In this document: positions 24,256 to 42,574 of the stretch, piece by piece
How positions within the stretch are numbered: position 1 is the stretch's first letter
How the letters are laid out: each line of letters starts with the position of its first letter
Sequence record: OP953026.1
Reading direction: 5' to 3' (one strand)
DNA length: 64,000 nt
Notes under the pieces: generated by a model
The model's input: only the letters and a program-made list of their open reading frames with translations
Databases searched by the model: none
What the model was told of the DNA's origin: nothing
Position numbers and translations under genes: made by a program

Positions 24256-24669
24256 ATGACTAGTCAACTTATCGTAGTTGATTTACAAAACCCTAGAAAT
24301 AAACATATATACAGTGAATTAACTCATGAACACCCTAGAACAATAACATCACATCTAGTTGAAGAATTAGATGATTTTGATGTTCATCAATATTCATACC
24401 AAGCGGAGTATAAATCTGGGATTGATCTTAGATTAATATTCTTTTGGGATGGACCATACACTGAACCAAGAGAAGAAGGTTACGAACCAACTGATCTAGA
24501 GAAAAGGTGTGTGAAGTTGTGTAGGCAATATGAGGCTGCGATTAACGGGCAATTATCTGTAGTTGATCACTCTCGGTTCCGGACGGTGTGTACCTTCAGA
24601 TCAGATAATAGTTTACCAACAACTTTAGACTGGATTCATAAAGAACCCCCATCTAAAGAGGTTGTGTAA
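24256..24669 (+). CDS. hypothetical protein
   Basis: start moved to ATG 24256, immediately after the previous stop. Confidence 0.7.
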   Translation: MTSQLIVVDLQNPRNKHIYSELTHEHPRTITSHLVEELDDFDVHQYSYQAEYKSGIDLRLIFFWDGPYTEPREEGYEPTDLEKRCVKLCRQYEAAINGQLSVVDHSRFRTVCTFRSDNSLPTTLDWIHKEPPSKEVV

Positions 24670-24695: not shown

Positions 24696-24790
24696 TATGT
24701 AGTTCCTTTACGATTGCTCTTTTATCTTAGTTTCAGTTTTGCTGAAGAAGTACCAATGAGATACCCTCCCCTGATCGGGGAGGGTTTTTG
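24696..24790 (+). ncRNA. candidate sRNA C (late promoter to terminator)
   Basis: TATGTAG start motif, no ORF, TTCAG/CTGAA hairpin, terminator 24763-24785. Confidence 0.45.
24763..24785 (+). terminator. intrinsic terminator
   Basis: ACCCTCCCC-TGATC-GGGGAGGGT plus TTTT. Confidence 0.85.
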
Positions 24791-24810
24791 ACATCTAAGA
24801 GGAAAATATA

Positions 24811-25191
24811 ATGTGCAAACAACATCGTGTAGTATCTATGAAAGTTACATGCACGCAAGCTCGCTATCCGATCGGTCTGTGCGATCTCGGATTTGATAAT
24901 GCTGCTGATGCTCGGCAATATCTACTAGATGTCGTCGAGTACAATATGGATCGTCTCCACCCACAACATGCTAATACATTCCAGCTACAAAATCTACAAG
25001 ACGGGTTCGTAGTATCCTACGATATCGAAAAAGATGGATCCGTTTATCTTCGGTTAACACTGGCGGCTGTAGCTTATCAATCAATCGATCTTGAGTTGGG
25101 GGTTACCGTTAAAGAAAATGAAGGGATCAGTGTTGTAATCAAAAATTGGATCAATGGTGATTATACTGCGGGGAACAAATACTTGCAGTAA
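24811..25191 (+). CDS. hypothetical protein
   Basis: 126 aa, GAGGA RBS. Confidence 0.8.
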   Translation: MCKQHRVVSMKVTCTQARYPIGLCDLGFDNAADARQYLLDVVEYNMDRLHPQHANTFQLQNLQDGFVVSYDIEKDGSVYLRLTLAAVAYQSIDLELGVTVKENEGISVVIKNWINGDYTAGNKYLQ

Positions 25192-25196
25192 TACCA

Positions 25197-25320
25197 TATG
25201 TAAAGAATACCCAAATCGGGATCTCCCGGACTATCTCCCTTCAGCGTTCCCGTCCGCAAATGAAGGTGCCGCCGAGATCCCACCTATTGATAATGCCCTC
25301 CCTTCGGGGAGGGCTTTATT
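25197..25320 (+). ncRNA. candidate structured sRNA B
   Basis: TATGTA start motif; GGGATCTC/GAGATCCC, CCTTCA/TGAAGG and GCG/CGC nested stems; terminator 25295-25313. Confidence 0.6.
25295..25313 (+). terminator. intrinsic terminator
   Basis: GCCCTCCC-TTC-GGGAGGGC plus TTTATTT. Confidence 0.85.
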
Positions 25321-25357
25321 TCGCTTAAGCCTATTTATTTTATTATAAGGGGTGAAA

Positions 25358-39025: not shown

Positions 39026-40185
39026 AAGAAGTCAACCTCAAATTCTTCTTCTTCACCAACATCATTTACAACGTTGACCATGTAATCAGGCTTCTCTTCT
39101 TCCTGAGGAGATGCTTGGGTTGATGAAATATCTAGGTAGTCTTCCATATAAAGAAGTGGGTTCTTCTCTGGCCAAACAAAATCAAATCCAGCTGATTCTT
39201 TAAACTCCACTTGATACTGTTCTACAACATCATTTTCAATACTTAGGAATGTTGCTGCGGCATTAGCATTGAAAAGTACCCAGTTAATAAGTTTAGTCGC
39301 ATTAACACCAGTTAGTTCACGACCTTCAGAGAATAGATAATTAATCCAGGTAACTTCAGTCTTTACAATTTCCCATAGTAGTTCAATGATTTTATCTTTA
39401 CATTGACTGTAAGCGAGTTTACCGCGTTCAGTTGCCAGTAGTGCACGAATAACTTCTTGTCCATATTGTGCATGGATTTCGAATTCGTCTTGGGCAATTT
39501 TCTTAACAGCGGCTGCAATTTGCTGGAATGCACCAGTACGACCAATAGCAAAGGTTACTGCAAAGGATGCCATGAACTGGATACGTTCTAGGAAATATAG
39601 AGCGATGAAGAACATGAATACTTTATTGTAAAGTTCTTGATCATTGGGTACCTGATTAAGAGCATACGCATGAACTGCGTCATGTGCTTCACCCATAGTG
39701 CGGGCTACTGCAACCATTCGTTCTTGTGCTTCTTCTACCCTAAGAATTTCGTCTAGAATAACTTTAGGATCTTTAAAGCTATTACGTACAATTTCAGAAT
39801 AAGTTAAAGCATGTACGTCTTCATTATCATTAATACGTACATATCCCGCCCATACTCGTGAATCTGTCATGACAGGTGATAGAATATTAACAATGGAACG
39901 ACTGGCTACAGAGTCAGCTTCCCATTGCCAGGCCAGTGTCTTAATCATCATGTCATAAGTTGATTTATCACACGTTTCAAATTCTACTAGACAAGTGGAA
40001 AAGTCAAATTCTAGCTCATCCCAATCAAGCATCTTTAGACGCTTATATAGCTCCCACATTTTAGGATAATGAGTGTGGATTGAATCTAGTAGACCTGGAT
40101 CATCTCCAAGAATAATTTCCGGTAGATGATAATCACTCTTAGCAACATTGAAGATTTTCTTTGGTAGTTGAGATTTAGTAGACAT
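39022..40185 (-). CDS. nrdB: ribonucleotide reductase class Ia beta subunit
   Basis: W..DE, EDVHALTY, LERIQFMASF, DEFEIH di-iron ligands, C-terminal Y. Confidence 0.95.
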   Translation of the reverse strand: MSTKSQLPKKIFNVAKSDYHLPEIILGDDPGLLDSIHTHYPKMWELYKRLKMLDWDELEFDFSTCLVEFETCDKSTYDMMIKTLAWQWEADSVASRSIVNILSPVMTDSRVWAGYVRINDNEDVHALTYSEIVRNSFKDPKVILDEILRVEEAQERMVAVARTMGEAHDAVHAYALNQVPNDQELYNKVFMFFIALYFLERIQFMASFAVTFAIGRTGAFQQIAAAVKKIAQDEFEIHAQYGQEVIRALLATERGKLAYSQCKDKIIELLWEIVKTEVTWINYLFSEGRELTGVNATKLINWVLFNANAAATFLSIENDVVEQYQVEFKESAGFDFVWPEKNPLLYMEDYLDISSTQASPQEEEKPDYMVNVVNDVGEEEEFEVDFL

Positions 40186-40253
40186 ATCAGTTCCTTTACA
40201 ATTTAAAAATATTTCTTACAATAAATAATAGAGGTTAGTATAAATTGGGAATA

Positions 40254-40285: not shown

Positions 40286-42574
40286 TTAAAGAGTGCACGA
40301 ACCGCCTGCACACCCAACTTCAGTATTAGTTACCTCAACAGCACGTTCAAGTGATTTAATATCAAGTCCTGCTGCTGTTTCTAGATTTACATAATACCGG
40401 GTTTTCATTCCACGTTTCACCATGTAGAAGTGATTACCTAGCATTTCATTAGAAGAGATCTTTTCAGAACCTACAATGCGTCGGTAGAGGTCCGCACTGA
40501 TTGTTTGATCAGTCCACTTTTGAATAATGGCATAGCAATCGATAAGATCTTTAGTGGGGATATCATAAGCTGATTCATACACATAGGAGTCATCATCTCC
40601 ATATGGAGCAGCCCATAGCACACGTGCACCATTATCAGTCTTATTAAGAATTAGGCGACGTACCGGGTATGGACCATTAGTTGACCCTAGTGCCTTAGAT
40701 GATGCTTCACCAGGCATGTATGCAGCTAGTACGGAGTGTGCAATACCACCATTCTCCTTAATTTCTTTCTCTAGCTCATCCCATGGATAAAGTTCTTCAA
40801 AGCCACCTTCAATGATAGTATCCACTGACTTATTATAAGTCTTACGTGGAGTCCATCCCTCTGGCCATTTAGTCTTATGAATCCAAGGCGCATTCCCGCG
40901 TTCTTTAGAAATCTTAAGTGACGCCTTGATAAGGAAGTACATATGCCGTTCAGCAATGAAGTGGATTTCAGCTTTACCAGCATCGCTGCTATATTTAAGG
41001 CCAGCACGTGCCATATGTGTGGCTAGACCCATGATACCAACACCAGCACTCATTCGATTCTTAGCGGTTAGTGCAAGGTGTGGGAAAGCATACTCTGCAT
41101 TAAGGATACAATAGTCAATCATCTTAAGTGCGTAGTAAGCCGCCATTTCATAAGTTTGCTTATCAGGAACGTTATCCACTGCAATAGCAGCCAGTGAACA
41201 AGTAGCAATCTCACCGCGCCCGTGATCCTCACTAGAATAAAGATCTTCCATTCGATAGTAAGGCTTAGTGGGTTCTGCGATTTCAAGGCATAGATTAGAA
41301 CTGTAAATAGGTTCTTTAAATGGTGTATGATGATTGAGTTCATCAATTTGAGCTGAATAGATGGTTCCAGTCTCATATGCTTCAACTAGCATTGATTTGA
41401 GAAGATCCCGAGCATTTACATAAGTTTTCTCAAATTTAGGATCCGCTTCATATTTTTCATAAAGCTTAATAAACTTATCAATATCACCACTATAGAAAGC
41501 ATCATGTAGATCTGGAGCAGTAAATGGATTGAATACAAAGATCATGCCATCTTTCTGAGCCGCTTTCTTAGCAAAGAACTTATTACTTAGGAATGCATAG
41601 TGAAGATCACGGTTCTTCCTATCCTCAGTAGAACGTGGATTACGTAGCTGAGTAATCATATCTGCTTCAGGATCGAAAGCACTGTAGTAACACGTAACAG
41701 CACCACCTCGACCATTTTGTAGGTTAGCCCTTACTGCTTTACCAATTACATCGATGTATGGTTTCTTACCTTGGTGAATGATTAGGCCATTACGGATAGG
41801 ATCACCAATTGACCTAGTCATTAAGTTAACACCAATACCTGCTGATGATTGGGTCATGATGTTAGCAATATAATCGCCCATTGCCAGTGATACACCATTA
41901 TCACCAGAAGCAAATAGGCAACATGATGCAAAACCACGAAGCTTAGTACCTAGGTTAACGTAGTTAGGTGTTGGCGCACTAAGAATTTTATTAGAAAGTA
42001 GTTTATAGTAATTCTCCACATGAGTCATGCGAGTTTCAGCTGGCTCTTTTTCAGCTAGAGCCATTGCCATTCGCATATATACAAACTGGGCAGTCTCATA
42101 TTCTTGACCAGTTTTACGATTACGTAGAGCATACTTTCCACGAATGTGATGAAGTGAAAAATGCGGACAAAGTAGGTCAAGATCGTGATCAATGATCTTT
42201 TCAATCTGAGCGTATTCTTTACTACTATAATCTAATTTAACAATGATACCATCTTTACGCATCCTGGTTTGAAGCGCTTTAACAGTTGGGATGCCATTTA
42301 GACCATAGAACTTCTTACGAAGATAAATCGCATATAGTCTACCAGCCATTAGATAATAAGACCATGTCTTACGATTTAAACATTCTTCAATAAGTTGTAA
42401 TTGTAGTTCTTGTGATGAAGTTTTATCACCAAGAGCTTGAACAGCATCCATCACAACACTACTCCAATCCACCTTATCGCCAAGATGTTGGGCTGCCCAT
42501 TCACCCCAACCATTAATCTTAGCAGGTGAGTATGCTTCTTCAGTACCGTCTAGTTTAATGATAGTTTTTAACAT
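40286..42574 (-). CDS. nrdA: ribonucleotide reductase class Ia alpha subunit
   Basis: TP..N, ASCC, SNLCLEI, ATCSLAA, TRYY, C-terminal CxxxxC; start probably MLKTIIK at 42574. Confidence 0.95.
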   Translation of the reverse strand: MLKTIIKLDGTEEAYSPAKINGWGEWAAQHLGDKVDWSSVVMDAVQALGDKTSSQELQLQLIEECLNRKTWSYYLMAGRLYAIYLRKKFYGLNGIPTVKALQTRMRKDGIIVKLDYSSKEYAQIEKIIDHDLDLLCPHFSLHHIRGKYALRNRKTGQEYETAQFVYMRMAMALAEKEPAETRMTHVENYYKLLSNKILSAPTPNYVNLGTKLRGFASCCLFASGDNGVSLAMGDYIANIMTQSSAGIGVNLMTRSIGDPIRNGLIIHQGKKPYIDVIGKAVRANLQNGRGGAVTCYYSAFDPEADMITQLRNPRSTEDRKNRDLHYAFLSNKFFAKKAAQKDGMIFVFNPFTAPDLHDAFYSGDIDKFIKLYEKYEADPKFEKTYVNARDLLKSMLVEAYETGTIYSAQIDELNHHTPFKEPIYSSNLCLEIAEPTKPYYRMEDLYSSEDHGRGEIATCSLAAIAVDNVPDKQTYEMAAYYALKMIDYCILNAEYAFPHLALTAKNRMSAGVGIMGLATHMARAGLKYSSDAGKAEIHFIAERHMYFLIKASLKISKERGNAPWIHKTKWPEGWTPRKTYNKSVDTIIEGGFEELYPWDELEKEIKENGGIAHSVLAAYMPGEASSKALGSTNGPYPVRRLILNKTDNGARVLWAAPYGDDDSYVYESAYDIPTKDLIDCYAIIQKWTDQTISADLYRRIVGSEKISSNEMLGNHFYMVKRGMKTRYYVNLETAAGLDIKSLERAVEVTNTEVGCAGGSCTL

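Follow-up and report, generated by a model that had tools for sequence, protein, structure and literature searches.

A short RNA encoded on the plus strand at 24700..24789 of the DNA analysed here, a 64,000-nucleotide (nt) stretch of record OP953026.1 (the window), is a published transcript of the jumbo phage phiKZ, and synteny, sequence and compensatory base changes in its relatives point to a conserved family of noncoding RNAs (ncRNAs) in nucleus-forming jumbo phages. The window is that of a phiKZ-type phage, the sequence around the RNA being 99-100% identical to 46 Phikzvirus genomes, including those of phiKZ, PA7 and PA02. The first-pass annotation had proposed a trans-acting late small RNA (sRNA) whose 5' end covers the ribosome-binding site (RBS) of the ribonucleotide reductase gene nrdB, and which shuts off this enzyme together with early translation. 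We favour a different reading, which we regard as about an even call: this known short phage RNA would belong, in truncated form, to a chimallivirus ncRNA family, the unpaired 5' arm with a boxA-like string would be its conserved working part, and its match to nrdB would be a lineage-specific extension of a complementarity to Shine-Dalgarno (SD) sequences.

A published short RNA and its probable family

The transcript is real and has already been published. ONT-cappable-seq of phiKZ (Putzeys et al. 2024, microLife; bioRxiv 10.1101/2023.10.13.562163, supplement) places the transcription start site (TSS) of promoter P129 at phiKZ position 262671 (window 24700) and the transcription termination site (TTS) of the intrinsic terminator T118 (-17.8 kcal/mol) at 262760 (window 24789). 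Near the small RNA, the window coordinate equals the phiKZ coordinate minus 237971, and near nrdB the offset is 237579. According to the same supplement, two transcription units start at P129, the 89-nt TU196, which contains no gene, and the 621-nt read-through unit TU197, which covers PHIKZ288; Table S7 lists this exact RNA (262671-262760) as a '5'UTR-derived ncRNA candidate' (UTR, untranslated region) of PHIKZ288, and 17 ncRNA candidates have been published for phiKZ. That entry and our element are the same object, with equal TSS, terminator, 89-nt length and folding energy, and the discrete small RNA with the predicted ends is in this way borne out. In the portions of Putzeys et al. 2024 available to us, the candidate is given no target or function, its promoter is labelled 'early', and neither the nrdB RBS match nor homologues in other genera are mentioned.

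The independently initiated RNA of 89-90 nt starts at 24700, right after the TATG at 24696-24699, and either stops at 24763-24789 or is read through. Its predicted fold (-26.4 kcal/mol, equal to the published value; z = -2.6) leaves the 5' arm unpaired. A small internal hairpin with a stem of 7 base pairs (bp) and a 3-nt loop (24731..24747) is found in both the minimum free energy and the centroid structures, and is followed by T118 (24763..24789), a G+C-rich 9-bp stem with a 5-nt loop that ends at the published TTS. The T5 tract of the terminator lies at 24785-24789, and its first T closes the stem.

The phiKZ genes on either side of the RNA are PHIKZ287.1 and PHIKZ288 (NC_004629). In PS119XW/phiHQ, PhiPA3 and Psa21, a 230-nt intergenic region comes right after the gp287.1 homologue and starts in each case at TATG, and at this same genomic position the 5' block UUCCUUUACGAU-GCUCUUU opens a longer structured RNA. 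We define the 5' block of the family as UCCUUUACGAU(N)GCUCUUU; the phiKZ copy has the position, the TATG start and the block. The block reads UUUCCUUUACGAUGCUCUUU in PhiPA3 and CCUUUACGAUAGCUCUUUU in PS119XW, with a looser version in Psa21. Pattern scans of IMG/VR and metagenomes yielded further members, namely L030, Phabio (L044) and several contigs of ~300 kb (family loci, in our numbering: L021:1945-2130, L022:1932-2140, L023:1962-2140, L030:1480-1682 on the minus strand, L044:5047-5250, L041, L046, L053, L058, L067 and L110). The family RNA is annotated in none of these records. A profile built on the 5' block finds its best match, both in the window and in the whole phiKZ genome, at 24700-24723 (phiKZ 262671-262694); taken alone this match has E = 0.15 in the window, but it lies inside a syntenic gap of 140 nt.

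The RNA of the relatives (PS119XW/phiHQ, PhiPA3, Psa21, Phabio and metagenomic jumbo-phage contigs) is ~150-200 nt long, and the shared block is followed by a variable hairpin, a T-loop hairpin, a third hairpin with a conserved CAUCGAC-type loop (hairpin 3), a fourth hairpin and a terminator. The T-loop hairpin has a 5-6-bp stem with compensatory changes and a loop of UUCGAGU or UUAGAKU (GGGUUCGAGUCCC or GGGUUAGAUUCCC). An RNAalifold consensus contains 18 pairs, 13 of which show compensatory changes, and in hairpin 3, 67 of the 72 cells are paired, compared with 21-36 of 68-72 in slid controls. Several pair types are seen already among four independently found members. The relatives thereby carry ~100 extra nt of structure between start site and terminator, while the 89-nt RNA of phiKZ is without the T-loop hairpin and hairpin 3 and consists of the 5' block, one small hairpin and the terminator. 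This comparison indicates that the phiKZ RNA is a shortened family member.

We considered whether the element of the relatives is a tRNA or transfer-messenger RNA (tmRNA) and rejected this. The canonical T-loop sequence on its 5-6-bp stem resembles a tRNA T-arm; however, no acceptor stem could be drawn, ARAGORN finds no tRNA or tmRNA, and the hairpin is absent from the phiKZ copy. Rfam searches at E <= 1, together with ARAGORN, gave no family, tRNA or tmRNA match in our loci L001, L021, L022 and L023, and Rfam 15 at the gathering threshold gave no match at the element in the window, where it reports only seven tRNAs at 28.7-35.9 kb. Descent from a spacer of ribosomal RNA (rrn) operons was addressed by a BLAST search of the PS119XW element against E. 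coli genomes, which returned no match in a database too large for short matches to be found. Separately, the pattern scan caught sequences ending in GGACG-T-arm-(C/A)TGCTCCAC(CA), like the 3' ends of tmRNA-like genes, in viral or metagenome contigs of ~100 kb (L049, L050, L055, L056, L078, L090, L098, L099 and L137) and in L061; some of these contigs are classed as viral.

Downstream of the element the four phages have unrelated genes, so that the RNA is a unit of its own and not the leader of one gene. For gp288 itself no homologue was found outside Phikzvirus, whereas the upstream gene has homologues, and neither the downstream proteins of the four phages nor the flanking proteins gave a functional clue. 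A comparable case has been described: 201phi2-1 sRNA005 and phiKZ sRNAgp182, upstream of the tail gene gp182, are conserved across phiKZ, 201phi2-1, EL and PA3 (PMC11512511). There, too, a short RNA arises by premature termination downstream of a phage promoter and is conserved in position and sequence (PMC11512511). It differs from ours in locus and sequence and in that it keeps a conserved downstream gene, whereas the PHIKZ288 RNA keeps its upstream neighbours.

As published transcript mapping shows, a phage RNA polymerase starts at 24700, and its transcripts end at T118 or run into PHIKZ288. Across the family, as synteny, sequence and compensatory changes indicate, the element keeps its place just downstream of the gp287/gp287.1 homologues, whatever gene comes next. 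Most members start at a TATG; a single-stranded 5' arm rich in pyrimidines (UUCCUUU...) is followed by a boxA-like GCUCUUU(A/U)ACAA box, by hairpins and by a terminator, and phiKZ is without the T-loop hairpin and two further hairpins of the relatives. In the mechanism that we propose, the conserved unpaired 5' arm would be the working part, and the terminated RNA may act in trans in the cytoplasm, where the arm could pair with purine-rich SD regions or bind a protein that recognises the boxA-like box.

Termination by-product or RNA with a role of its own

It may be argued that the short RNA has no function: PHIKZ288 would simply have its promoter before the terminator of the PHIKZ287 operon, most transcripts would abort there, read-through would set the level of gp288, and the conservation would reflect promoter-proximal DNA signals and the shared terminator. 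We consider this explanation unlikely, although the published map offers points in its favour. In the supplement of Putzeys et al. 2024, T118 ends both TU194 (the PHIKZ287 operon, from P128) and TU196, with TU195 and TU197 as the read-through forms, and the arrangement is a common one, with 42 terminators inside 5'UTRs reported across six phages. An attenuator-type layout is present as well, with the start site before the terminator and the terminator before the gene, and with short and read-through transcripts. However, the ~100 extra structured nt of the relatives, with their compensatory changes, are not needed for a mere overlap of promoter and terminator, and the element stays while the downstream gene is replaced. 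In addition, no pairing that competes for the 5' strand of the terminator, as an antiterminator would, is evident in the predicted folds.

Several observations nevertheless weigh against a functional family member in phiKZ, and some of them favour the by-product explanation. Table S7 of Putzeys et al. 2024 marks northern validation for other candidates and not for the PHIKZ288 one. The phiKZ copy is without every covarying structured module, so that its homology rests on ~25 nt and synteny. The pattern that yielded most of the additional members called for both the boxA box and the T-loop, and the conservation of these motifs among them is partly by construction; Phabio and the locus L051 are without the UUCCUUU motif. 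The conservation from +1 to +25 could also act at the level of DNA, since promoters of the phage non-virion RNA polymerase (nvRNAP) need sequence downstream of +1 (PMC4666361).

The invariance of the RNA within the genus, next to sequence that varies, supports a functional family member, but with a caveat. We compared eight Phikzvirus lineages, covering every identity class seen, and all eight share a 100% identical small RNA, within a stretch free of changes that reaches from about -15 to the start codon of PHIKZ288. Nearby changes occur only further upstream than about -15 and in the codons of PHIKZ288. In the T2P group (T2P, U5, U1B and phi9_PA9; L008 in our numbering), gp288 is 80.5% identical in protein while the RNA is 100% identical, which points to a recombination boundary close to the PHIKZ288 start, at it or just within the gene. 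The invariance could reflect low overall divergence combined with this boundary, and not selection.

Two models in which the RNA acts in cis were rejected. In the first, the 5' arm or the UCUUAG stretch would mask the SD of PHIKZ288 in read-through transcripts; some such pairing appears in a fold of 141 nt, where z is only -2.4, and in the relatives, whose downstream genes are unrelated, the SDs of these genes offer no consistent partner. The second is leader-peptide attenuation. An 11-codon open reading frame (ORF; MRYPPLIGEGF) at 24756-24791 on the plus strand spans the terminator hairpin, without a canonical SD. The mapped 3' end of the RNA falls inside the stop codon of this ORF, which in the short form would be without a stop; it is probably not translated. 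Attenuation through this ORF was discarded on account of the stop at the transcript end and of the separation of transcription from translation in nucleus-forming phages, the phage nucleus being described as uncoupling transcription from the cytoplasm (PMC12908238).

Complementarity to the nrdB leader

The complementarity between the RNA and nrdB that the first-pass annotation described is correct to the base. The putative target gene is PHIKZ305, encoding the ribonucleotide reductase beta subunit, on the minus strand downstream of nrdA. The 15-nt seed AGTTCCTTTACGATT (24701..24715, plus strand), a block kept in PhiPA3, PS119XW and L030, faces the nrdB leader at 40189..40203 (minus strand), which reads AATTGTAAAGGAACT from 40203 to 40189, contains the SD AAAGGAA and is followed by GAT and by the ATG at 40185, so that the site ends 3 nt before the start codon. 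The 15 contiguous pairs cover the SD and consist of 14 Watson-Crick pairs and one G-U pair; a terminal U-G pair from 24700 would give 16. Both sides are predicted to be accessible, with a mean unpaired probability of 0.86 for the seed and 0.79 for the target. The target site lies inside the mapped nrdB 5'UTR, which is 33 nt long and starts, according to Putzeys et al. 2024, at a middle promoter (P146, TSS 277797, window 40218) that is also seen by differential RNA sequencing (dRNA-seq).

Silencing by such pairing is feasible, given that antisense oligomers at the PHIKZ305 RBS impair phiKZ: oligomers of 11 nt on the RBS of phiKZ mRNAs silence them, and for PHIKZ305 the reduction of plaques and ChmA by knock-down was rated effective to very effective (PMC12571901). 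The wider claim, a general shut-off of early translation, fared less well. AAAGGAA does stand upstream of all eight start sites listed in its support; however, the motif is among the three commonest 7-mers in phiKZ RBS windows and precedes 20 of 410 called ORFs, and the claim follows only from the 7-nt core TTCCTTT of the seed (24703-24709), which resembles an anti-SD and is not specific evidence.

We next consider whether the nrdB match exceeds what chance would give. For this purpose the phiKZ genome was joined from seven loci, 410 ORFs were called, and RBS windows were taken as -20..+3 unless stated otherwise. Long pairable stretches are common in this DNA: an all-against-all comparison within the window gives ~700 diagonals of 15-mers pairable with at most one G-U. 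Against the RBS windows, a match of at least 15 nt (at most one G-U) is reached by a fraction of 0.010 of dinucleotide shuffles of the 31-nt 5' arm, by 0.0105 when the UUCCUUU core is held fixed, and by 0.018-0.023 with wider windows (-35..+20). A null of random real windows contained trivial antisense overlaps with RBS windows and was excluded from this contiguous-match test. A duplex energy as good as the -23.0 kcal/mol observed is found for 22% of shuffles and 36% of 31-mers drawn at random from the phage, and with 17 published phiKZ ncRNA candidates, 0.2-0.4 chance matches of such quality are expected genome-wide. By contiguous length the match is marginal, at ~1-2% per RNA; its energy is ordinary, and the result is not robust to the 17 candidates.

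Among the true RBSs of the phiKZ genome, that of nrdB gives the strongest duplex. An internal nrdA site (phiKZ 279996-280065, minus strand, about window 42417-42486) ranked first, at -24.7 kcal/mol, and was rejected: this G-U-rich imperfect duplex lies at a mis-called start inside the coding sequence, and we judge it an artefact of U-rich against G-rich sequence. The duplex of the true nrdA RBS with the 5' arm reaches only -7.3 kcal/mol. We conclude that the nrdB match is genuine and marginally beyond chance, suggestive and not compelling.

Natural variation does not add to the case. Across the eight lineages, the nrdB leader varies at three positions, only at the 3' edge of the target: the KTN4 type has a U in place of C, facing G, and an A in place of G, facing U, and both still pair, and in OMKO1 a C replaces the U that faces A and the end pair is lost. 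With every natural variant of the RBS the duplex energy stays between -18.4 and -20.8 kcal/mol; since 10 of the 16 seed bases are G or U, most target transitions would be tolerated anyway. The expected covariation of seed and target is not borne out, the seed being invariant and the target changes, two that keep pairing and one that breaks the end pair, being what chance predicts. Because the seed does not vary, no compensatory test is possible within the genus.

More telling are the relatives. PhiPA3 keeps almost the same seed, and its nrdB leader offers the 5' arm of the PhiPA3 element 6-8 pairable bases, which lie ~25 nt before the ATG; the SD offers none. In phiHQ (equivalent here to PS119XW), 8 nt can pair between the extreme 5' end of the RNA and the nrdB SD, and the Psa21 leader can pair over 8 nt with one G-U. 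A search of 14-nt perfect complements for another target in PhiPA3 returned, among the matches listed, only the element itself in the PhiPA3 contig, which is a weak negative. These comparisons indicate that the 8-nt matches of PS119XW/phiHQ and Psa21 are generic anti-SD matches and that the long match is specific to Phikzvirus. With complementarity over only 6-8 nt in the relatives, nrdB pairing cannot explain the conservation of the seed.

The supposed late timing is not borne out either, as it rested on TATG alone. This motif, with the start at or beside its G, is the late/middle motif of nvRNAP; it is frequent and occurs also at middle promoters (PMC4666361). The published table of Putzeys et al. 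2024 classes P129 (24650..24699, plus strand, ending in the TATG) as an 'early promoter', and enters it without a validation mark from Ceyssens et al. 2014 or Wicke et al. 2021. The sequence upstream partly resembles the AT-rich early consensus. A late shut-off is not supported. Since antisense at the nrdB RBS works and harms the phage, a natural repressor expressed early would be hard to rationalise.

Taken together, the claim of a trans-acting sRNA whose 5' end binds the nrdB SD, blocks initiation and lowers ribonucleotide reductase, with weaker effects on other genes that have an AAAGGAA SD, stands as regards the transcript, the seed, the target site and feasibility, and falls short in timing, specificity and conservation. 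It has in its favour the 15-16 uninterrupted pairs that cover the SD of a mapped leader and involve the very 5' end, predicted to be unpaired, of a real transcript, a match that only ~1% of shuffled arms equal against any phiKZ RBS, the top rank of nrdB among true RBSs, the duplexes retained by all natural variants, and the strong loss of phiKZ plaques in vivo with 11-nt oligomers at this site. Set against these are a duplex energy that is not unusual, the chance matches expected with 17 candidates, an invariant seed without covariation, a relative, PhiPA3, that keeps the seed and not the target while others have generic matches, and a promoter published as early, which would make a repressor of a middle gene whose knock-down is harmful counter-productive. 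On balance, we regard this explanation as improbable.

Some trans-acting sRNAs, such as prophage-encoded DicF on ftsZ, occlude the RBS of their target through a seed that is single-stranded or lies at the 5' end. The phiKZ RNA shares with this type its own promoter, an unpaired seed, complementarity covering a target SD and a Rho-independent terminator that ends in a U tail; it differs in that the seed persists in relatives with an nrdB RBS that does not match it. Under the reading that we favour, the 15-nt match would be a Phikzvirus-specific extension of generic anti-SD complementarity, either fortuitous or a recently captured target, and would not be the reason why the seed is conserved.

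The boxA-like string, neighbouring genes and implications

The most conserved string of the family after the seed is GCUCUUU(A/U)ACAA, and GCTCTTT is common to all five independently found members. The gamma-proteobacterial boxA consensus is GYTCTTTAANA (PMC5725501). Agreement with it is complete (11 of 11 positions) for the Psa21 group, L030 and Phabio and reaches 10 of 11 for PS119XW; the phiKZ string GCTCTTTTATC (24716..24726, plus strand) agrees at 9 of 11 positions, with two mismatches in a degenerate 3' half. As a relaxed boxA-like motif is common in phiKZ (33 matches), the phiKZ copy alone is not significant.

If GCUCUUU(A/U)ACAA were a true boxA, it could bind host NusB-NusE(S10) and serve either as a decoy that starves rRNA antitermination or as a nut-like site for read-through of T118. 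The perfect agreement in the Psa21-type phages, L030 and Phabio, and the setting of the box, in a single-stranded stretch near the promoter and ahead of a terminator with partial read-through, speak for such a role. With rrn boxA and the lambdoid nut sites, several members share the 11-nt consensus near the 5' end. However, phiKZ transcribes with its own non-canonical polymerases, independent of the host apparatus (PMC4666361, PMC11512511), which are unrelated to the Nus-responsive enzyme; the phage nucleus separates transcription from the cytoplasm (PMC12908238); neither a boxB nor a boxC was identified; and the AT-rich phiKZ genome has many relaxed boxA-like strings. Nus-dependent antitermination on the phage polymerase is unlikely, a cytoplasmic boxA decoy is conceivable from the shared string, and we hold the explanation as a whole to be highly doubtful. 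We give as little credence to a bolder proposal, in which the 5' arm of this jumbo-phage sRNA would carry both a UCCUUU mimic of the 16S anti-SD and a true boxA of the rrn type, might capture NusB-S10 and/or SDs in the cytoplasm and so disturb host ribosome biogenesis or translation selectivity, the nrdB RBS having been added in Phikzvirus.

Three observations concern the neighbourhood of the RNA. PHIKZ288 (24811..25191, plus strand), the gene of unknown function that the read-through transcripts reach, lies downstream. Upstream, the ORF at 24256-24669 (plus strand) seems under-annotated: RefSeq PHIKZ287.1 has 52 amino acids (262482-262640), while the ORF matches phrog_16349 across 137 residues, relatives annotate a gene of ~414 nt, and homologues are PhiPA3 gp352, PS119XW gp365 and Psa21 gp385. 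Upstream of PHIKZ289, at 25172-25321 (phiKZ 263172-263292), the tables of Putzeys et al. 2024 contain a second short unit of 120 nt, from P130 to T119, with the same promoter-before-terminator layout as the P129-T118 unit. A near-identical hairpin core (CCCTCCC-loop-GGGAGGG) is common to many intrinsic terminators of the phage (1216-1245, 11780-11795, 25295-25321, 36437-36452, 40250-40283 and 46460-46489), and it accounts for most of the long complementary pairs in the all-against-all scan.

The more solid new result is that the front end of the RNA, as its sequence suggests, belongs to a conserved and unannotated RNA family in related giant phages. Regulatory RNAs of virulent phages are little known, and for phiKZ there are only candidate lists. 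If the short RNA is only a by-product of termination, the finding is an ordinary one; if the nrdB pairing is true, a lytic phage would tune an important nucleotide-supply gene with a small RNA of its own. Based on our findings, a 5' arm common to at least five chimallivirus genera stands beside covarying hairpins and an rrn-type boxA string. This would turn an anonymous entry of a supplementary table into a testable family, and may give access to the possible cytoplasmic uses of RNA by nucleus-forming phages.

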